Source: Guillardia theta CCMP2712
Lineage: Eukaryota > Protista > Cryptophyta
Assembly: GCF_000315625.1 (NCBI RefSeq)
Contig: NW_005434624.1
Location: forward strand, 182,559 to 246,558
Length of the DNA stretch: 64,000 nt
Direction of reading: 5' to 3'
Shown here: positions 6,891-60,013 of the stretch, piece by piece
Layout: each line of letters begins with the position of its first letter
Numbering within the stretch: position 1 is the stretch's first letter
Position numbers and translations under genes: made by a program
Notes under the pieces: model-generated
Seen by the model: the letters and a program-made list of their open reading frames with translations, nothing else
What the model was told of the DNA's origin: nothing
The model's database searches: none

Positions 6891-7149
6891 GTGGCATATG
6901 ATTCACGAGAAAGAATGGCTGATAGCTCTTCTAGCGAGTAGACAACGCCATCTCAATCATCAAGAATCTGGTCTTGACTGCGTGGAGTCGGAACTCACTG
7001 GGCTCACCTAGTAGCTCAAGCACTGAGGCTACCGTCGGCGGCGAGCATGCCGGAATGGCTCGAGTCATGCCGCATTGATGAGTGAGTCCGACTGAGCCTT
7101 CAGCAAGGGGCCTTATCATGACATTGCCTCCGATTGAATGAAAGTTTCA

Positions 7150-7622
7150 AGGGCCCGAGAGTCACCGCGTGCCGGCCGCCGGGACCGGGCCCGGTGCCCG
7201 GACGGCCGCCGTCACGGTCCGATCGGTACCGTACCGTGCCGTGAACGCCGTGACCGTCGTACGGCCGTGACCGGGCCCGGGGTGCAGTGCCGCGGCCGGC
7301 GGGCTAACTTCCCAGTGGTTCACTGAATGGTTCGGCCATCATCTGACTCTATCTGACTCTCGGCGAGTCGCGCGGCCTCAGTGCCGCCCCCGGGTTGAGG
7401 CGATGGTGTGCCTAACTGTAGTAAGCACGGTGCCGAGTCCCCGGTCCCGATCCGGCGTCGCCGGGCGAGGCCAGTGCGTCACGGTGCCAGGCTGGCAGGC
7501 CGCCCGGCCCGGCCGGCCCGGCCGGGCGGTGGCGGCGGGTCCGACCGTACGGTCCGATCCCGGAGTCCCCGGCCCTCCGAACTTCGGACAGGCTCGGCAC
7601 CCGCCCGGGCCGCCCGGCCCAG
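7150..7622. repeat. GC-rich palindromic-word island A
   Basis: Dense CCGG/GGCC/ACGGT/TCCGA/GAGTC/CAGTG words. GACCGTACGGTC palindrome near 7543. The 13-mer GATCGGACCGTAC is shared (reverse complement) with ~51011. Confidence 0.7.
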
Positions 7623-8075
7623 TCTACCCCACCTTCCTAGCGAGTCTGGCTGGACTTGCCACCCCTACCCCTTCAGATCCCATCCGCTCTAGGGGAATCG
7701 CAGCAGTTGTCCCACCCCCACCGAACCAAAGTACCCCCTGAATTGACTCCCGCCCCCACCACCCCTGTGTCATTTTGTGCTATCGCCTCCACCCTCTGTG
7801 ATCCAGCAAGGAAGCACTCAAATGCACCCCTGGTAATATACCCCTACCCCCAATTCTGGAATTCGGTACATAGTCTACCACCCTAGAGTTAAACTTTGTA
7901 CAAATCCACCCACCCTTGCAAAATGTAACCTACCCCACTGTGTGTGAATATCAACCCAACACACCCAGGATTTTCCCCAAAGAGTACCCTACCTTTTCAA
8001 CCCACTGCACTTCACGTCTGCGAAGTACCCCTTAATTTTCACCCTACCATATCTACTCTACTACCCCACCCACTG
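7623..8075. other. ACCCC/CTACC-rich non-coding tract upstream of the GPDH gene
   Basis: Repeated ACCCC, TACCC and CCACC words in otherwise non-repetitive sequence. Confidence 0.55.
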
Positions 8076-23689: not shown

Positions 23690-24430
23690 GACTACCCACC
23701 CTATCAGAAAATTAACCAGACGAAATTACCCACCCGTTTCCCACTCCCAGAAGGGTAGAAGACCCCTTCATATCCACCCCATCACCTCTGTTTGACCCAC
23801 CCCTTTGCCCCTTCCTAGGAACAGTCTTTACCACACTGTGCTAAATAAGTTTCGCCAGCTGTCAACTTACCCCCACCCCTGTACCCCACCCCACGTAGCC
23901 TTCCATCGAACTTGAAGAAATTTGGATGATTCATTACCCCACCCTGCTTTTCCCTTCACTTTACTGTGCAGACTACCCATGATCTATCAATTTCCACCCC
24001 ACCCCAACGTTAAAACTGACGTGTTCGGACCACTTCCGTAGTTCACGTGGGGGTGGAGGGGTACCTTCGAAGTTAATGTTCCACTGTCCCTTCCCGGCTG
24101 GTGTAGGGATACCCTCACCAAGGGACCCCTAAATATACATCCGATTTGAATCCGCCAGTACCCCCGTCTATTTCCGGATTTAGTACCCCACCAGCCAAAG
24201 AAGTTTACTTCGCTGGGACATGAGTCAGCAATGTGTCCGCTGGCAGTCGATGGAGGGGTAGGGGGTGGGGTTCCTGGTCAGGACCTCCGGGGGAAGGGAG
24301 CTGTAGTAAAGAACGTTGAGATACACCACACTAGCCTAGTAGGACCGAGGGGTCCTACTTGAACATCGGTGAAGGGAGACGCCCATATTGAGATGCGACT
24401 ATTCGGAGAACCCCTTGGCAATGAACGGTC
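23690..24430. other. ACCCC/GGGGT-rich non-coding tract
   Basis: C-rich words on + to ~24045, then mixed and G-rich. Lies 5' of the - strand gene at 23210. Confidence 0.55.
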
Positions 24431-24504
24431 GCTATCCAACCGATTGCCACCGCTGGACTCCCCGTCAAGTTTTTTTTAACAAGGAGCATATACTATGATA
24501 AGTA

Positions 24505-24915
24505 AACCCGGCCCGGTCACGTGACTCCCCCTGTGAAGCCAGCCGCCGGGCGCGCACGATCCGAGGGACCAGTGGGAACTTCCATTCGTCGGATCTCCCA
24601 ACGGCGGGCCCCCGGGGGCTGCGCCGGTCGGTCACACTGTCCAAATCAGTCATTGAGAGCCGGGCCGCGGCTCACGGTGTGATACCCGGACGCTGAGGAG
24701 CCTACTAGCCACGCCCGGAACTTAACTTTGAGTAAAAGACGCCCGGGTGCTGAAACCGTTGAACAGGTCACCGTTCGTCATCAGCCTGGTACGGCGAGGC
24801 AGAACCTGACCCTCACAGAGTACGGTCAGTGTATCATCATAGTACTATGATGCAGTGCCCGGCCGGTCACCGGGTGGCACTACTGAGAGACTCTAGTGCT
24901 TTGAGTAAAGACGAA
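24505..24915. repeat. GC-rich island B with conserved core (- strand, 24719-24736) and 18-bp palindrome CATCATAGTACTATGATG (24835-24852)
   Basis: AACTTAACTTTGAGTAAA at 24719-24736; partial second core CTTTGAGTAAAGAC at 24899-24912. Confidence 0.8.
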
Positions 24916-30920: not shown

Positions 30921-31049
30921 GTTGATAACTGAGGTAGTGGTGATTGATGCCTGGGGGCATCTAAGTTTTTCCTTTGAATTTTTGTGGTCTGATCCTGCTA
31001 ACATTATAAATACTTGACTAAGTGAAATGAACTCTTATCCGACGATTGA

Positions 31050-31620
31050 CTTCAAAGTTCGAGTCCGATAGCCTAGTATCCGACTCATGGATGATGCCGC
31101 GCCGCGGCGGACTCGGATCCGATCCGAGTGCCAGGACTGATCCGCTAACTTTCAGTGAGGAAGTCAAATCGTCGGATCATCTGTGGCACCATCACTCGGA
31201 TCATCCGTCACTGTAGCGGCATTGCCCCCGGTGAGCCTCACTGCGCCGCCGGGAGTCCGATCACTGCCAGGCTGAGTCAGTGATCATCGGATCCCGGTCC
31301 ACTGCCATGACCCGATCCGAGCCTGGCATGACTCAGTCACTGACCCGAACGACCGTACGGTTCACTCAGCCTGGCAGCCGCATCGTCACTGGAGTCACTG
31401 AGTGGTGGCCAGCCTCACTCGGAGTCGGAGTCACAGCCGCCGAGTACTCAGTGGTTAATTTAAAGCGCCGGTGCGGCCTCCCCCCGAGAGGCAGCGGCCG
31501 GGCTTTCGGACTCAGCCTGGACGGTGCCACCGTCAGTGTGAGCGGCTCGGCCCGGCCCGCTGCGACTCGCCGGAGTCGAGTGACTTCGGAAACCCGGGCG
31601 CCGGGCGGTTGCAGCTTATA
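31050..31620. repeat. GC-rich island D
   Basis: Dense GAGTC/GACTC/CACTG/CAGTG/TCGGA/CCGG words; GACCGTACGGT at ~31351 is shared with island A. Confidence 0.7.
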
Positions 31621-31837
31621 ACCGTCCAACTTGTTTGAAACCACCACGCCAGGATTTGATGGTGGGTCTCCCGCGATGCTTCTGTGGCATGGGCGGGAGA
31701 GGGGGGACAAGGAGAGTGAGCAGGAAGGAGGGAGAGAGGTGGAGAGGCACTGAGTGAAGGAAGAAGAAGGAAAAGAGCGAAGAAAGTATCCTCGAAGAAG
31801 CTCCTTTGTCTGTTGTTTGCTCTCATCTGTGAGAAGA

Positions 31838-42480: not shown

Positions 42481-42774
42481 TGAGTCTCAGCAAATTCCCT
42501 AAAACTGTTGCAGAGTTTGTGTTATGTCGAACACATCTCTCAAATTTTTTTTTTGCGCTATTTCTGACCAGAAGTTTTTTATTATCGAAATGATACCTTC
42601 GTGATCGATGATCAGGTTAATTACTTCACTGTTGTATCGAGTTGGAGTGCTGTGACGCCTCTTTCTCCGCGCTGTAATCCATCACTGTAATCCATCAGGA
42701 TCGTCATCGGTCGCTGGATTTAGTCTTGATCATCACATGATTACACAGCCTGTCGCGAAGTGGCGATAGCAACA

Positions 42775-43163
42775 GTGACAATTGCCGGTGGGGTACCGTC
42801 GTTTGAGCCACTGGCTTGCCAGTGCCCGGTGCCCCGAGTGACGCCACTGGGCCGCAGCTGCTCTGCCGGGCGCGCCGCTTGAAGGCTTCACATTCCGGAG
42901 GCCGGGCCCGGCCGGGCGCGAACGGCGCCGTGAAGTGGCCCGGCCCATCGGATGACAGCCTCGGAGCCTGAGTAAAGACACTGAGTCAGTCCACAGGCTG
43001 AGCCTGCGGCACGGCGGCGTCCGATCGAACCGTCCCACACTGAGTGGCCGGCCCGGCCCGGGCCGCCGACCGTAGTTCCGAAGTTCTGCTAAACGTCTCC
43101 CACCCACCCCTGGGCGCCCGTCAAAAGTCTTTACTCAAAGTTAAGTTAAAAATCAGTACGAGG
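42775..43163. repeat. GC-rich island F ending in the conserved core (43129-43163)
   Basis: CTTTACTCAAAGTTAAGTTAAAAATCAGTACGAGG is identical to 59678-59712. Inverted partial core TGAGTAAAGAC at 42969-42979. Confidence 0.85.
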
Positions 43164-43219
43164 ATAAGCCACTGCCATGACTTCCCATGAAATTTTTGGC
43201 TCGAAATTTCAAATTTGGG

Positions 43220-44490
43220 ATGATGCACCCCACTCATTGGCAACACGTTACGACCCCTCACCCTTATTACCCTGTGCCATGCTCCACCACCCTACCGTCC
43301 TTCATCACCCCACCCACCCTTTTTGAGTTGTTTGTTTACTAGCACCTTCTTTGAATCATTAGTAAACAATGCTTTTACCTACCCTACCCTGTCCTGGACT
43401 TGTCTACCACCCACCAAGTCCCCCAACATCTTACGTAATCTCTTGACTACTTCGTCAACTACCCCTTATGTTCTGCTCCGCCATGGAACCGAAGGGTGGG
43501 TACTACGCTTTTTAGACACAGGGGCGTCGTAATGGATCCACCCCCTAATTCTAGCAAATGTACCGGTGGGCCTCCCATCCCTAGCCAAAAAAAAAAGAGA
43601 ATCCCCTGTACCACCCTACCACTATGAGTGTAGAACCAGCTAGATAGGAGGGGTATTGAATTACCCTATGTGGGGTTCGGGGGACACACCACCCAATGCA
43701 GGCAGCGGGGTGGGAAAGAATTCTAGAGGCATCCTATTATGAGGTCCTGCCTAGATATTGGTGGGTAGGGGTGTTTTGCAAGAGGATAACTAATACTCAA
43801 GATGGGGTGGGGTACAAGCAAGGGAAAGATCTTTTCAAGCAGGGGTTATTCGATCGAGGAAACCTCAGGGAGTCAGGGGTAGGGTAGGTAGTCGACTTAA
43901 AATTGGGTTATGGCATATAAAGGTTGTAGTGAGGGGTGGGGTGCCGAAGGGTCTTATCTGTCTAGCTTGTACAAGTCGTAAGCTTGTGGGGTCCTAGGAA
44001 CTCTATGAAATGGGGGGTGAAGATAGAAGAATTTTGGTACTGCTGCTAGGACCACTGCAATACGAAACCCTCCAGGCTGTGCCCTCCCACCCCCGTCCCA
44101 GATTTGGGGATAATGAGGAAGTTGGGGGTGGGGTACAGTCAAATTTAAACTTAGAACTTTCGAATTAAACAGAAAGTTTCCAAATATTCAACATGAAGAT
44201 TGAAATTAAGACTCTCAAATACCTGCACCCACATCATCTACCACTGCTTTGAGGGTGGTAGATTTGTGGGGGACGAAAATCGGGGCTAGGGTGGTCAGTA
44301 GCCCCCAGGACAAGGGTCATCGGTTGCATTTGGGCTACAGGGGTACCCACAAACCTCCAGACTTTTTGCAAGGTAGAAGAATTCCCAGTGGGGTAGGTGC
44401 ACCTGGAATTCAATCCTAGGGTGGGGTCCTTGACAGATTTGAAAAGTGAGAGGGTGGGGTAGTGAAGAAAGGGTAGTAGGGGTAGGTGTT
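43220..44490. other. Long ACCCC/GGGGT tract with strand-polarity switch
   Basis: C-rich words on + to ~43620, predominantly G-rich afterwards. Confidence 0.6.
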
Positions 44491-48841: not shown

Positions 48842-49444
48842 AAGATATCAATGAAGTGTGTCAGATAATCTGTTGTGCTTCTCCAGTGAATCTGACGGGC
48901 TACTTCCTGCATTCGAGATCAGCGCCTTGCTGCACATGAAATGTCGAAGTAACTCTCTAGGAGGTGAAAGTTGCAGATGAAAAATGATGTACACGATCAC
49001 GACAAACTGCGGAACATGGAAAGTCGATCATCACTGAGACCAAGTTGATGAACATTCGCACGCAATGGTGGATCACACCCCGACTCTACAAAGCACTGAC
49101 GGGTTGCAAATACATCAAAAAGATAGATTCAGAGTTTAGTTGAGAATATTGCTTTCATAGCAATACATGATGAAGGAAACATATATGATGCAAAAATTGA
49201 TGCAAAAACGCTTCTAGCTGCACATGCTCTCGGGTCACGTGAACACTTAAAACCAAATGCTTGAATGCTACTTGCACGAATGGAAACTTGTCAAGGCATG
49301 TAAAGAAGAGGAGGACAATGCTGAGACACATCATAAGCTTTCAGGCCCTGAAACATCTCTGCAAGTGTACATGCTCCAGCCTCCCCGAAGCCTCTCAGGA
49401 CATGCAGGGGCGTAGCTTGAGCGGGAGCGGCATGAGCGGAGGCG

Positions 49445-50790
49445 CGGGGTAGGGGAAATTTAGGGGTGGGGGTGGGGGGTGGACAGGATTTCTTGGGGGT
49501 AAGGGGGTTAGAGTTGGGTCTGGAGTAGGGTGGTTGCCTCACTTTCACTCGGCCCAGGGGGAGGGTAGTGGGGGAGGGGAGGTAGCTTTTGTTGGATTCG
49601 AGGGGGGTGAAGGTCCTTCGTACCGACCACCCACCCTGGAAATGGACGCATCATTACCCCTATTCAATATCCACCCACCCTCCCGCTAGGACGAGTTTCA
49701 ATATGAGGGAAGAAGGACTTGCGAACATTAGACGGTGAACTTGAAATATTTCGATGAACTTTGAAATTGCCACGGGCAGCCGCTTGAATGCTTGGAGAGG
49801 CGAACGAAAATTGAACAAAAGGGGTACTCCACGAAAGGGGAGTCCTGGAATACGACCAGGGTCCTGGAATACGATACAGGGGGGGTAGTCTGGCTGAATC
49901 CTGATGACCCTACCCCCCTTTTCCTCATTTGAAACGTATGTTAAACCAACCTACCACCCTCGTTGAATTGGATCTCAGACCCCTCACCCCCATTTTTCAA
50001 GTACCCACCCTTATTAAACCTCATTGTAGACCCAAGCCTAGCCTGCACCCACAAGACGTTACACCCCATGTGAAGCATTTCCTAATTGTTTGAAGGACCC
50101 CTACCCCCAATACGAGATCTACACCCCACTTTCAGGGATCCACCGACCCCTACCACTACCACCCTATCTTTCTACACTCCTTTTATGTATGCAGTAGACC
50201 TCTCGAATCTTCCTCCACCATGCCCTAAAACCACCCCACCCCATGTGTAATTTTCTAATCAAATTTTGAAGTTGGGAGGGTGATTTCGACTACCCCACCA
50301 CATCCAGTACTGACTACACCTACCCTTGGTCAGTACAATCCTTCTCCGTACCCCCGCCCCCCCTGTATCCTCCACCCCCTCCACACGGCCCCACCCCCTC
50401 TGATCGAGGCCCACCGATCTTCGTGATTACGTCGACATGACCCCATTGGGGGTCAGGGGGGAGATGGGGGTACCCCAGCGAGTCTCTAGGAGGGGTGGAG
50501 TTGAGCTACCGTCACTATTGTAGTAGTACAGGGGGTAGGTCATCAAATTCGAGATGTAGGAGAAGGGGTGGGGTACTGTAGAGTGGGGTGATGTAGTCAG
50601 AAAGGGTCACTGCTGCCCATTGAGTGGATGGGAGAGACAACAAGGGATGGGTTGCATGGGAGCACACGTGGTGGGGGTACATCAAGGGGTGGGTCCCTGT
50701 ATAAGGATTGGAAGGGGAATAAGGGGTGATGCTTCAAGTATTTATTTCTGTGGGGTGGGGTGGGCGATACGCCCTGCGGGGAACAAGGGT
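49445..50790. other. Long GGGGT/ACCCC tract with G-C-G polarity blocks
   Basis: G-rich ~49445-49615, C-rich ~49625-50400, G-rich ~50445-50790. Lies 5' of the phosphate carrier gene. Confidence 0.6.
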
Positions 50791-50845
50791 TTGAATGACT
50801 CGATTAGAAATCAAATTTCAGGCTTGGGCGGCTCAGTTTTTTCTC

Positions 50846-51360
50846 TTTACTCAAAGTTAAGTTAAAGCTCAGTACTATGATGATTGCCCGGCCATGCCGT
50901 CCTGGCCAGATCCGGCCGGGCGGCTCCGGGCTCGCCGCGGGCCGCAAGTTGTGACGGCCCTGTCGGAACCCCGGCGGCGCCCGGCCGGCTTCCGAGCCTC
51001 CGTGAGCGGCGATCGGACCGTACTCCGGGACTCCGAGTCCGGCGGAACTTCCGAACGGGCCGCAGCCAGTGGCACCGGGCGCGCGGGCAGTTCAGTGAGG
51101 ACTGAGGGCCCCGGCGGGGCCGGGCAAGAATGTCGAGGTCTCACTGAGCGGCACAATACTTGAGCTTTGATTCTCACTGAGCTGATAGACTAAAATAATC
51201 CCTCACTGTCAGGCTCAGTGCTTGAGGTGTGCACCGTTTGCCATCATTGAGTCCCGAGTTCCCCCGCGGCCCGGGCCGGCCCGGCCCCGGGCCGGCTCAT
51301 CAGTGGTATGGACTCCGGCCAGCCGACTGAGGAGAAACTTGCCAGTGTCCAGGCTCGCCG
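50846..51360. repeat. Conserved core (50846-50863) followed by GC-rich island G
   Basis: TTTACTCAAAGTTAAGTTAAAGCTCAGTACTATGATGATTGCCCGGCC; the tail resembles AGTACTATGATGCAGTGCCCGGCC at 24841. Confidence 0.85.
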
Positions 51361-51363
51361 AAT

Positions 51364-51885
51364 ACGATCAAGTAGACGGTGCTCGAATCATCAGTGACTC
51401 CCAGATACAAGGGTGACTCCGATGATTAATCCAAACCTCTCTCTCTGCCTCGATACTACCGTACTGATAGCTGTAGAAAGCCAACTTCAAACTGCAGAAA
51501 TCTCAATATGGCCTTTGGAGCGCTTAACTGACTATTCTAATGTTGCTCGTTGCGTTTCCTCGAGCTTTACTCAACGTTCGACGGTTGATGAAATATCAAT
51601 GAGCTCCTGACACCTTGAAATCGTACAAATCAATCGGAGATTGTAGCCTCGGAAAGGGAAGACACAAACATTCTTTTTCAATTCACTTGAGTCACACAGG
51701 TGATAATCAGCAATTACATCATCAATTGATTATCAAATCCATCAGAATAGTCAGTGAAGCGCTCCAAAGGCATATTGAGATTCCTGCAGTTTGAAGTTGG
51801 CTTTCTATGACTTTCGAGGCAGAGAGAGAGAGGTTTGGATTGATGGCCCTTGTATCTGGGAGGATCCGAGCACCTACTTGATCGT
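51364..51885. repeat. Long inverted repeat (arms ~51364-51542 and ~51740-51885)
   Basis: Manual alignment shows shared blocks ACGATCAAGTAG, CTCCCAGATACAAGGG, AATCCAAACCTCTC..GCCTCGA, TAGAAAGCCAACTTCAAACTGCAG and CCTTTGGAGCGCTT.ACTGACTATTCT. Confidence 0.9.
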
Positions 51886-52060
51886 GTGCTTGAAGCAGTT
51901 TGGTATGTCTCACTTTTTAAATAATAAATGTCCATGCAGGAAAATTCACATACTTGTAAACAGTACCAGAAAGCAACTATGAAACCTGTACTAGTACGAT
52001 CCGTCGGTCTCAGCTGCCACCGTCTGGTGACGGTCAGTGTCCTCAGCCTGCCAGAGGCTT

Positions 52061-54691
52061 TCAATCGCCGGTGAGGTCGATCACATTGATGTGAGAGGTC
52101 AGCTGGTCCTCCCGCGCCCGCTTGCGCCCGCTGAGCGGGCGCCGTACAAGCGACTTCCTCGTCGGCTCCTCTTCCAAGTTGAAGTCGTCAGAGTCACTTG
52201 CACTCCTTAGCGCGGAGAGTCTCTCGGCTGCGATGAGAGACTTGAGCGGGCTGAAGCGCTGCTGGGAGACCTGCTCCTCCCATCATCAGCCTCTTTCCTC
52301 TGACTCGCCCTCCTCAACATCGCACTCACCCGTACCCGAGAAGAACGCACGTCTTTCCCCGACCCTTTGCCGGTGGCGAAGTCGATCTTGTATGCAGGAT
52401 ACGCGCTGGCGCTGTGCTGCAGGCAGCTCAAGTCAGGATCCAGGCACATACAGCTTCACAACTCAGTGACTGTGGTACCGAGATGACGAAGATGCCGGGG
52501 TTGCTGCTGTTGTCGACCATGCTGTGAAAGTGCTGCCCAGCACTGCCTGCTGCAAGTTCAGCTCCGACTCCTCTTCATTCGGCAGGCGGAGAGTTCACAC
52601 TCAAGGTGTACGCACCGCTCGGGTCCAGAGGAGGCGCGCGGTAGCTGGATTGTCCTTCCGTGTATCGCCCGACCACAATCTTCAGAGGTTCTTTGCGGTC
52701 AAGGCGCTGCAGCAACGAGGAGCTTTCGAGCTGCACTCACCCGAGCGAGCAACATTGACTGCTCGTGAGGATTCGAAGGATCAGAATGGCAGTAGCGCAG
52801 CGAGTAACTGAGCAAGCAAAGTCACTGTCACCGTCCCCCGTCCTTGCCGCCGAGCAGCAGGCAGTCTAACCTCGCGTCTCTCGCAAAGTAAGCGCCCGCA
52901 CCAAACGCCATGCCGTTCCTTGACCCTGGCATGCCAGCATCACTACCGACCTCAACCTCATATGGGCCATCCACCTGCAAGGGTGACCAGGAACCCCTCG
53001 TTCATGATGGCTGATCCGGGATTTTCTCCAGACCTGCTTTTCGTCAGCCGGAAAGCAAACAGCGTCTGCATCCTCGTGGCTCTCACCCGCTCCCTGATCC
53101 CGTGCCGTGGAAGGCCCAGCGCTCCATAGTCGAGGGGTTCCACTCCATCCCTCGCTTGAGTACCTCGTTGCGAATCCGGTTTCTCTATAGGTTGCGTCAA
53201 CCCTATCGCTCCTAGTGTCAGGGAAGGAGATCAAGTGACCTGGATCTCAAAGAGCTGGCGGAGGCCGGGGTTCTCTATACGGCTGATGCGCACGATCTTG
53301 GGCCTGCAGGTAGAGGAACAGGGTCAGTCCTCTCACTACCGCCCTTGTCTGCTGACTACGCACCCGCTCCCGCGGATAGACGTGTGGAAGAGGCTCGACA
53401 CCATTCGATACTCCTCGCTCTCGTTCGGGAGCTGCTTGAGGAGGTCCACGTCCTCCCTGCAGGCAACCCGTCAGCCATGCTGGTTACAGACAGGACTACA
53501 GCAGTTCAACTTACGTCTTCGACTTCCACAGCCTTCCGGGGAAGAAAGAGAAAGCACCATGCAACGGACAAGCAGCAAGTCAGCTCAACGGGACTACAGC
53601 GTCGCTCGCAAGAGAAGGAACATCACTTCCTTACCAAGGGTGGTCGGTCACTTGCGTCTTCCCGTCGTAGCACACCTCGTGCACCTCCCCGTCGTTGGTG
53701 TATAATGTGCCAGAGACCGGCACGTGCTTCTCAAATCTCCCTTCAAAGATGCGAAAGACGTTCTTCTGCTCGTCCAGGCATTCGTAGATCCCCTGCAACA
53801 AGCGCGGGTCAAGGACACAGTCTTCCTCCTCCCCCACAGCGCATCTCTTACCTCGCCTTCCATCATGTCATCTTTCCAGCTCCCCCAATATTCATAGTCG
53901 GACGCCTGGCAGTGCCCTTGCCCTGCCAAGGTCTCGATAAGAGATAATCGCATCGATCATATTGCTAAGGGATCATCGTATCGATCATATTGCTAAGGGA
54001 TCATCGCATCGATCATATTGCTAAGGGATCATCGTATAGAGCATATTGGTAAGGGATCATCGTATCCATCAGACCAGAGGTCAGCACGGCATGCAAGCTC
54101 GATTCTCACCGTTGCGAAGGTCGTCCTTGTACTCTCCCTCGTATTTCGTTCCGTCTGCCCACTCGTACGTCCCGTAGCCATGCCGCTTGTTGTCCTTCAT
54201 CTCCCCTGCATGGGTATGTCGTCATCACTCGATTCAAGTCACCGCTACGGTTGTCACCATGATAGTAAGAGCCGTCGGGCCATTGCGTCATCCCGCTCCC
54301 TTGCAAGACGCCGTCCTTGAACCGTCCCGTCACCCTGCGGCTCAGTCACTCTTGCCCTGCTCGTCTCTCCTCAGGGGAGCTTCGGACTCACGTTGGCCCT
54401 GACTGGAAGTGCATCGCTCCTTCCCCGGTCAGTGGGCGACCCTCCTCCGTGCCCTCCCAGTAAATCCCGTCCGCCCATATGCGCCTGCAATGCCATGAGA
54501 AGGAGAGGATGGCGCAGCTGCGATGCAAGCATGAGCAACAAGTACCTCATTCGGCCATCGTCGAGCACCTCGGAGAAGATGTAGGTGTCAAGCAAAGTTG
54601 CTGACATGTCTACAGCATTGCCCGACGTGAGGTCTACACTGACTTGCACCGTCATCTGCAGGGGTAAGTCAACCAATGGCTGAGAGATCAT
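52061..54691 (-). CDS. MORN-repeat + PARP catalytic domain (mono-ADP-ribosyltransferase type) protein
   Basis: MORN motifs GRFKDGVLQGSG, YEGEYKDDLRNG and YWGSWKDDMMEG. PARP exons EYRMVSSLF..KIVRISRIENPGL, ERWAFHGT (HGT at 53101-53109), GMAFGAGAYFARDA, SMLLAR|IVVGRYTEG, FHSMVDNSSNPGIFVI and AYPAYKIDF. Confidence 0.85.
53947..54066. repeat. 28-bp minisatellite (ATCG[C/T]ATCGATCATATTGCTAAGGGATC, ~4 copies) in intron
   Basis: Directly visible tandem units. Confidence 0.9.
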
Positions 54692-59087: not shown

Positions 59088-59279
59088 CCCCGGCAACGAT
59101 TGAGGTTGCTGCAATGAAAATCCCAGTTTCGCGGTTGGCAAGGGCCAACCGTTCCAGTCGGCCATGACCATTCGGACGTAGCCGATCAGTGACAGGATCT
59201 TGCAGCCTTAGATGTAGACTATGAAGTGTACTAGAAGTGAAAACTATCTTCGGAACCACCCTGGTGACTAAGTGAAATA

Positions 59280-59712
59280 GTTAGCCGTCAGGGAGTCCGA
59301 CGCCGTCAGGGAGCCTCGGAGTCCGACGCCGTCAGGGAGTCCGACTGTGAGTGTGAGACTGAGGCTAGCCTCGGACGGTGTCTCGGAGACTCGGAGGCTC
59401 ACTGAGCGGCTAGCTGCCAGGCCCGCGGTTCCCGGACTCCGAGTCCTGGCGTTGGCAAGCCTGAGCCTCTCAGGCTGGAATGCGGCGGTCCGCACCGTGC
59501 CGGCCGTGCCACGGCCTGACGGTTTCCATTCCCGGCAGTTCACTCTACTGGCCCAGTGGGGTCGGTGGCAGTGACTGGCCGGCCCGGGCCCGGGCCGCGG
59601 GGCCGCGGGGGCGGGGGCCGGCCGTGCCTATATGAGTCGGACTGGCCGCGCAATTTGTACGAAACCTTGACCCTGACCTTTACTCAAAGTTAAGTTAAAA
59701 ATCAGTACGAGG
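59280..59712. repeat. GC-rich island I ending in the conserved core (59678-59712)
   Basis: Island vocabulary plus the 35-bp block identical to 43129-43163. Confidence 0.85.
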
Positions 59713-60013
59713 GCAGTACGAAACCACTTGATGACCACCACTGATGCTGGTACCATATATCGTTTACTCAATTATTTGAGCGAAATAAGATAGACGGAAT
59801 GGACGGGAAAGATGGAGGAATGAGAAGATCCAGTGAGGAGGAGGAGCGGGAAGGAGAGGGGGAGAGGATCAGGGAGATCGTGAGAAATGGTAGGAGAGGA
59901 TGGATGGGGCGAGGGATGAAGCAGAGGGTGATAGCGTCAGGAGAACCAGGGAGTTGAGGATGTGGGATGAGAGCCGGAGCAGATTCAAATCTCCCTGTTG
60001 TCATGGAGAGGCA

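Follow-up and report, generated by a model that had tools for sequence, protein, structure and literature searches.

GC-rich palindrome islands in Guillardia theta nuclear DNA and probable insertions of island-like sequence into an adjoining inverted duplication

Six intergenic islands in a 64-kb stretch of Guillardia theta DNA (the whole stretch that was analysed, hereafter the window) are built as mosaics of odd palindromes that have a C or G at the center, and the same signature is found in four extra pieces in the arm of an inverted duplication that abuts one of the islands. The statistical evidence for this island grammar is strong, while that at the inverted duplication is small. The extra pieces are very probably insertions, and the explanation that we favor, at about even confidence, is that they were written by the process that builds the islands, through recurrent breakage and hairpin or fold-back repair.

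Results

Six intergenic islands share a palindrome grammar

The islands of the window are as follows.

6978–7718: island with the palindrome signature
24414–24747: island with the palindrome signature
31003–31765: island with the palindrome signature
42686–43253: island with the palindrome signature
50875–51363: GC island G, a mosaic of C/G-centred odd palindromes directly beside the left arm of the inverted duplication
59143–59772: island with the palindrome signature

All are non-coding and intergenic, 300 to 700 nt long, and recur every 7 to 17 kb. They have words in common: 47 8-mers occur in at least three islands versus 8.1 ± 3.5 in dinucleotide-preserving shuffles, and for 8-mers with at least two A/T the figures are 18 versus 2.1 ± 1.7. 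No collinear homology was found among the six, the best local alignments being about 25 nt or less. An initial annotation of this DNA had suggested that the islands may not be transposon copies; shared words without collinear homology bear this out, in that the six are not collinear copies of one transposon.

The shared words are odd palindromes of the form X-S-X', where S is C or G. Odd palindromes with arms of at least 4 nt and a C/G center numbered 71 in 2254 nt of islands versus 9.7 ± 3.1 expected (the maximum in 200 shuffles was 21), while those with an A/T center numbered 3 versus 4.6 expected. Even palindromes were more weakly enriched (34 versus 13.4), and five control regions showed no excess of C/G-centred odd palindromes. 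Scanning the window by this signature alone returned exactly six regions, all of them non-coding, with 90 C/G-centred versus 5 A/T-centred palindromes in the 3.7 kb inside these regions, and 111 versus 100 in the 60 kb outside. The palindrome arms are highly diverse (3–10 nt) with no unit consensus; what is constant is the C/G center. The limited vocabulary of oligonucleotides proposed earlier is not supported in that form: words are shared beyond the shuffles, but the property they have in common is a palindrome rule with many arms, and two events described below derive from their own target. The islands appear to share a grammar more than a dictionary, and a fixed dictionary of oligonucleotides fits less well.

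Four of the six islands have at one edge, on either side, a copy of an AT-rich element of 32 to 35 nt (TTTACTCAAAGTTAAGTTAAA...CAGTAC), and these are the four copies that the window contains.

50844–50875, plus strand: 32-nt AT-rich element at the other edge of island G, with hundreds of genomic copies
43129–43163: copy of the element
59678–59712: copy of the element
24716–24736, minus strand: copy of the element

By depth the element is present at about 500 times single copy in G. theta (X4; ~2764 versus ~5) and at about 280 times in the sister species described below (X2; 1716 versus ~6). Its copies have unrelated flanks, some stand in tandem with spacers of 3 to 34 nt, and the element is altered or truncated where an island adjoins on its 3' side. 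A pattern scan of viral contigs with its 21-nt core gave 0 matches. Among metagenome contigs, the sole match to the core pattern, at 989–1009 of contig L001 (Ga0065711_1027012), does not extend into the rest of the element; this contig is AT-rich with a CpG-island-like stretch, and from 700 of its bases and a composition table we take the match as chance in animal, possibly human, DNA.

About 1.4 kb of DNA by island G (49400–50840) has a strong strand skew, running from G-rich to C-rich to G-rich, and is composed of GGGGTGGGG/CCCCACCCC-like words, with similar ones flanking other islands (7640–7740 and 43090–43125). Raw ChIP-seq reads have zero depth over 50300–50785, though an independent assembly spans it, which could be depletion, a filter, or mappability.

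Handed zigzags and two 8-nt events within islands

The islands also contain 11-nt zigzags, X-S1-X'-S2-X with |X| = 3, of which there are 25 versus about 1 to 2 expected. These zigzags are handed: when X contains at least one A/T, the order is C-then-G in 15 and G-then-C in 1 across the whole window (two-sided p = 5e-4). Handedness is seen only for |X| = 3, with none at |X| = 2, and the order of adjacent palindromes at any spacing (CG 19 versus GC 11) is not significant. About a quarter of the zigzag turns bear the "wrong" base (classes CC and GG). Outside the islands, 60 kb contain six X-C-X'-G-X zigzags versus about 0.9 expected, and none with the reverse order; the 24.4–24.7 kb island has three of them as close neighbors, and the other three are in or near genes.

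59311–59321, plus strand: zigzag GAG-C-CTC-G-GAG
31264–31274, plus strand: zigzag CTG-C-CAG-G-CTG
11115: single zigzag outside the islands
35864: single zigzag outside the islands
52461: single zigzag outside the islands

Two zigzags reveal the direction of change. At 59284–59345, three 18-nt tandem units are identical save for 8 extra nt (59314–59321) in the middle one, which read C + rc(GAG) + G + GAG straight after GAG; since there are no substitutions among the tandem units, this event is very recent. At the second site, CTG is followed by C + rc(CTG) + G + CTG (31267–31274), and without these 8 nt the sequence is a perfect 19-nt odd palindrome (31259–31285), which is evidence for nested events within an island. 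Given these two polarised events, we conclude that a recurrent type of mutation adds 8 nt by duplicating a 3-nt target and leaving C-X'-G between the copies.

An imperfect inverted duplication abuts island G

A lectin ORF in the window has 100% identity to GUITHDRAFT_164025 of G. theta CCMP2712, the next relative being Hanusia phi at 86%, and the window is therefore cryptophyte nuclear DNA. The inverted duplication lies between two genes, starting 176 nt downstream of the stop codon of one and having on its opposite side the 5' end of a mitochondrial-carrier gene on the minus strand.

51364–51542, plus strand: left (island-side) arm, holding the four probably derived insertions; found by local alignment and repeat finding
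51543–51739: loop between the arms
51740–51885, minus strand: right arm, with the short, probably ancestral, state at all four places
52061–54691, minus strand: MORN/PARP-like neighbor gene, the frame ending ...INVIDLTGD with its stop at 52061–52063

The strand of the neighbor gene was fixed from its C-terminal reading frame. The gene is interrupted by many short introns and encodes MORN-like repeats together with a PARP-like GxGxYFA piece, and its C terminus (...INVIDLTGD) resembles a SUMO-interaction motif; Pfam searches of its single exon-sized ORFs gave no match, the gene being split by introns.

The arms, which are terminal inverted repeats of 179 and 146 nt, were defined by local alignment of 51340–51560 with the reverse complement of 51720–51910. 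When the window was compared with itself by blastn, they aligned at 74.6% identity over 181 columns including gaps (E = 7e-28), and no other copies of the arm were found in the 64 kb. As RNA, the 522-nt feature is predicted to fold into a single long hairpin (−267 kcal/mol, z −19), and three presumed RNA runs contain 0.49 to 0.67 of the repeat's words. Rfam at the gathering threshold and a tRNA scan gave no matches over the whole window, a pattern scan of JGI metagenome contigs for the arm core gave 0 matches, and no palindromic extension of the arms into the loop was found.

The left arm is genuine and not the assembly artefact against which the initial annotation had warned, because a contig from an independent 2011 data set (X4) spans 50548–51677 with 0 differences to the window and raw 38-nt ChIP-seq reads (X10, 2026) cover both arms, the left one without indels.

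The 522-nt feature is like foldback and MITE-like elements in its long terminal inverted repeats round a short loop, in its small size, and in being present at least once more, with homology that stops at the arm's outer end. One such copy was found (X4 record 17, homology stopping at 51887), and the right arm has about twice the read depth of the left, equivalent to about one extra genomic copy. It is unlike these elements in its very low copy number and in having no target-site duplication at its ends, where the flanks ...CGCCGAAT and GTGCTTGA... have no common direct repeat. We regard it as a repeat unit of low copy number that arose as an imperfect inverted duplication; this forms part of the overall explanation given below and shares its roughly even standing.

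Within the loop, 51565–51578 matches the first 14 nt of the high-copy 32-nt element at 13 of 14 positions. The inner flank that includes this match (51543–51582) is common to the further copy, and the right arm is without it. A 101-nt part of the loop (51633–51733) is absent from the sister-species contig and has CAAATC direct repeats at its boundaries, as expected for a microhomology deletion or duplication.

The extra pieces in the left arm are island-like

Realigning the arms reproduced the earlier description of them. All four multi-base, non-microsatellite gaps are extra letters in the left arm, and all fall within the approximately 110 nt nearest island G; the distal ~65 nt of the arms differ by only 4 substitutions and one 1-nt indel. 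The right arm has one CT more than the left in a (CT)n run.

51376–51378, plus strand: insertion 1, ACG; placement ambiguous by 1 nt
51390–51397, plus strand: insertion 2, ATCAGTGA, 8 nt
51414–51427, plus strand: insertion 3, 14 nt in place of CCATC (5 nt)
51454–51473, plus strand: insertion 4, 20 nt in place of AAGTCA (6 nt)

The earlier picture of an island overwriting its flank suits the two events that replace 5 to 6 nt, but the other two are pure insertions. Two of the four recall the 8-nt events of the islands. Insertion 1 reads on the minus strand as C + rc(AC) right after AC. At insertion 3 the ancestral letters, taken from the third copy described below, are ATC, from which one would predict the core that is present, CGATGAT (C + rc(ATC) + G + AT). 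Both insertion 1 and this core fit the rule C-X'-G-X after X. As evidence the 3-nt event is weak by itself, and reaching the present insertion 3 from the prediction takes three more small changes. Insertion 3 also pairs with 51386–51392 as a 7-bp inverted repeat. Insertion 2 makes two overlapping odd palindromes with G centers at 51394 and 51396. In insertion 4 there are an odd palindrome, TAC-C-GTA (center 51460), and two direct copies of ACT spaced 8 nt apart. Neither insertion 2 nor insertion 4 is derivable from its own flanks, and both look like self-contained words. A search for local templates of the four insertions within ±650 nt gave just 8–9-mers, at chance level.

The likeness of the inserted bases to the islands was scored by k-mer log-odds, with the six non-coding islands set against the rest of the window. 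K-mers touching inserted bases scored 0.29 to 0.74, compared with about −0.9 to −1.0 for random sets of segments of the same lengths (p = 0.0016, 0.0014, and 0.0004 for k = 5, 6, and 7), and leaving out island G gave a similar result (p = 0.0006–0.0024). The inserted bases are only 42% G+C, yet island-like by k-mers, while the shared parts of both arms score at background. Palindrome density gave the same picture. The insertions hold three C/G-centred odd palindromes with arms of 3 (51394, 51396, and 51460) and one even palindrome, and the homologous part of the right arm has no such palindromes. Three in 49 inserted nt matches the island rate (0.056/nt versus a background of 0.0075/nt, p = 0.006), and the remaining 473 nt of the inverted repeat contain two. 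The proposal that the inserted bases are island-like is thus upheld by both measures for this window and this one locus, and the island words it had cited are where it had placed them (ACCGTACT at 51017 and GACGGTGC at 31520).

Could these be ordinary indels, with filler from slippage, end joining, or template switching, and an island likeness that stems from small numbers and post hoc choice? There are four events only, at a single locus chosen post hoc and selected for being striking, and the local 8–9-mer matches are at chance. The probability that four of four gaps are long in the left arm is 1/16 from the two arms alone, and about 0.004 once the two outgroup lineages described below, which have no multi-base indel over the same period, are counted; both figures are post hoc. 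Against coincidence stand three separate tests of the inserted bases, each significant at about 0.001 to 0.006, a C/G palindrome density equal to that of the island where the rest of the repeat is at background, and the stability of the outgroup lineages. We consider this explanation unlikely.

We give a similarly low rating to the import of ready-made words from the adjacent or other islands, whether by ectopic templated repair, patchy gene conversion, or oligonucleotide capture. It lies near the earlier vocabulary idea, and it would accommodate the self-contained insertions 2 and 4, the occurrence of 8–9-mers of insertions 2, 3, and 4 in island G on the same strand (51297, 51029, and 51017), and the excess of 8-mers common to at least three islands. 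These matches are short, however, and not above chance given island composition, and the two cleanly polarised 8-nt events come from their own 3-nt targets.

Less probable still is that the islands are functional modules (promoter, boundary, or replication origin) whose palindromic sites are kept by selection, the extra pieces being newly selected sites. Dimeric DNA-binding proteins prefer palindromes, some of them with a central C/G (bZIP AP-1 sites), and the non-coding islands, spaced between genes every 7 to 17 kb with a conserved 32-nt element at their edges, would suit such a role. Selection for binding sites does not readily account for highly diverse arms in which only the C/G center is constant, and zigzag handedness and 8-nt events made from their own target are mutational signatures rather than features of binding sites. 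In addition, the sister species covers the flanks at ~93 to 94% and gives no match of at least 80% to island G, a hole that is weak evidence.

Outgroup copies carry the short state

The direction of the four differences was read from two further copies of the arm.

X4 record 17: outgroup copy 1, at another locus of the G. theta genome (third copy)
X2 record 2: outgroup copy 2, a metagenome contig from a relative ~6.5% diverged in neighboring coding sequence

The third copy consists of the reverse complement of 51474–51582, then 13 nt, then 51823–51887 without gaps and with two differences, after which come about 500 nt that do not resemble the window. On the right arm, its letters are carried by about half of the raw reads (X10). 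It is short at insertions 1 to 3, and at the site of insertion 4 it has 13 nt, where the right arm has 15 and the left arm 27; it shares the inner flank of the left arm (51543–51582) and yet is short. X2 record 2 spans 51734–51887 with nine substitutions and one 1-nt gap and extends into the loop. Because of this loop continuation, and because a second contig bridges the right boundary, it is identified as the right arm of the sister species, and it too is short at the insertion sites. Compared with the right arm, neither outgroup copy has a multi-base gap (one contig each, read via summary tables).

At 51783, 51790, 51792, 51846, and 51854, the letters T, G, C, A, and T are common to the third copy and the sister-species arm, while the two G. 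theta arms share T, T, and A at 51790, 51792, and 51854. The G. theta arms therefore group together, by recent duplication or conversion, with the short copies outside them. Insertions 2 and 3 stand on either side of position 51854 and hence postdate the last event to homogenize the arms there.

The initial annotation had proposed that the extra pieces were insertions and had named long outgroup copies as the outcome that would speak against it; both copies are short. On a tree that is unrooted, and with contigs that cover the right arm of the sister species but neither its left arm nor its island, the comparison makes it highly likely that the extra pieces were inserted into the left arm. The reverse, a long ancestral state with pieces since deleted from the other three copies (right arm, third copy, sister-species arm), is the least probable of the alternatives: a root on the left-arm branch is formally possible, gene conversion between arms could blur kinship, and no sister-species contig covers the left arm, but it requires four deletions of exactly the island-like bases, inherited at two loci, and runs against the three derived substitutions shared by the G. 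theta arms, one of them (51854) between two indels, and against a third copy that is short despite having the inner flank of the left arm.

Taken together, the locus supports the action of the island's process on the neighboring arm; it does not alone fix the mechanism.

Discussion

A proposed model of breakage and hairpin repair

After the two arms last shared their sequence, the island-side arm probably gained four insertions or replacements of 3 to 20 nt. We hypothesize that DNA breaks recur within the island and at its edge and are repaired by hairpin or fold-back copying. A cycle would start with a 3-nt staggered break, or with the 3-bp target duplication left by an excising cut-and-paste element. 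Both ends would then be turned into hairpins in which the 3'-ending strand is tipped by a C, the hairpins would be opened, and annealing through the duplicated X would give X-C-X'-G-X, a gain of 8 nt. Opening farther from the tip without annealing would yield longer, lone palindromes. The scheme builds on what is established for hairpin-forming cut-and-paste transposases and V(D)J joining (PMC5499845) and for snap-back synthesis during polymerase theta end joining (PMC4912351, PMC5068794, PMC5728401). The fixed C may be what is left of the terminus of an element with C...G ends, or it may be added at a turn that is non-instructive. Repeated rounds would produce a mosaic of C/G-centred odd palindromes, and the island would creep into the neighboring DNA.

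Breakage, the hairpin intermediates, the source of the central C, and the enzyme are what we infer from the sequence patterns. Hairpin or fold-back copying is favored because the two polarised 8-nt insertions derive from their own 3-nt targets. Against it, insertions 2 and 4 cannot be derived by the rule from the ancestral flanks, and a scan of this window for inverted-repeat pairs with 3–9-bp flanking duplications gave only low-complexity matches and no resident element with C...G ends and a 3-bp target duplication. Import of words or a common seeding is possible alongside it, since strictly local copying leaves the words shared among islands unexplained. Taken as a whole, recurrent breakage with hairpin or fold-back repair, written by the island-building process, is our best explanation of the left-arm extras, one that we hold to be about as likely right as wrong. 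The reverse transcriptase or terminal-transferase-like activity first suggested is not supported in that form, as the evidence points to hairpin or fold-back copying at a staggered break. The earlier interpretation was right in spirit, in that insertions spread from the island, and probably wrong in detail, the evidence favoring break repair that writes palindromes over a fixed dictionary of oligonucleotides.

Relation to known processes

Cut-and-paste transposons of the hAT, Transib/RAG, and MULE groups form hairpins on the flanking DNA and leave excision footprints (PMC5499845). Such footprints, and the P nucleotides of V(D)J joining, resemble the events described here as short palindromic additions at a repaired break. 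Footprints also retain the target duplication on either side of a short filler, as is seen in the |X| = 3 zigzags, two of them polarised. Target duplications of 3 bp and C...G termini are known from CACTA-type superfamilies, which the 3-bp duplication here would fit by analogy. Classical P nucleotides are even palindromes continuous with the broken end; in the islands, the dominant class is odd with a C/G center, and even palindromes are the less enriched. The islands also differ from excision footprints in that no transposon was found in the window and that dozens of events are stacked over 300 to 700 nt at regular intergenic places. A graveyard of footprints like this is not known to us.

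Polymerase theta end joining and SD-MMEJ with snap-back synthesis (PMC4912351, PMC5068794, PMC5728401) come close as well. Both leave insertions at the junction, from a few to about 30 nt in length, that copy flanking sequence, also as its reverse complement, and are joined through a few bases of microhomology. At the present sites, the two 8-nt events, insertion 1, and the core of insertion 3 are nearby inverted or direct copies, and insertions 2 and 4 are not. To our knowledge, neither pathway has a fixed turn base, a fixed 3-nt target duplication, or handedness, or builds islands.

Template switching during replication creates or extends inverted repeats (PMC8604942, PMC10710096, PMC13100816). 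Here too one event makes a perfect short inverted repeat from local sequence, and clustered changes can come about in one step. These mutations differ in being scattered over the genome, without a C/G-center rule or an 8-nt unit and without concentration in GC islands. Double-hairpin elements and GC clusters, including organelle examples, have been described (PMC4524435, PMC5910586). Bacterial REP/BIME sequences, the GC clusters of yeast mitochondria, and the double-hairpin elements of fungal and algal organelles are, like the islands, intergenic GC-rich palindrome mosaics; they are copies of conserved units in bacteria or organelles, whereas the islands are nuclear, with diverse arms and no unit consensus. 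The combination of C/G center, fixed 3-nt duplication, handedness, and stacking every 7 to 17 kb is, as far as we know, a property of none of these nearest processes.

Implications for the cryptophyte nucleus

A bolder reading is that intergenic DNA is cut repeatedly, at a stagger of 3 nt, by a dedicated, site-bound system that seals the ends into C-tipped hairpins or copies them in that form, writing expanding GC-rich palindrome islands de novo. We think this rather unlikely. A hairpin-forming transposase or nuclease that has been domesticated could play this part, perhaps in connection with the 32-nt element found at island edges, and the system, if real, would be a genome-writing process without a described counterpart. 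Our search of openly accessible papers found no account of such islands in the G. theta nucleus and nothing specific on a transposase gene of a hairpin-forming superfamily.

If the breakage and repair model is correct, much of the intergenic non-coding DNA in a cryptophyte nucleus would be neither decayed transposons nor selected motifs, and would instead be the cumulative scar of one stereotyped break-and-repair reaction, with a unit event legible in the sequence (a 3-nt target duplication, a C at the turn, and a gain of 8 nt). The inverted duplication is one of the few places where the ancestral state stands beside the derived one. The islands would then be a rare natural record of hairpin-type repair, whose events could be dated and counted, and would offer a concrete target for finding the nuclease, transposase, or polymerase responsible and the role of the islands as origins, boundaries, or promoters.
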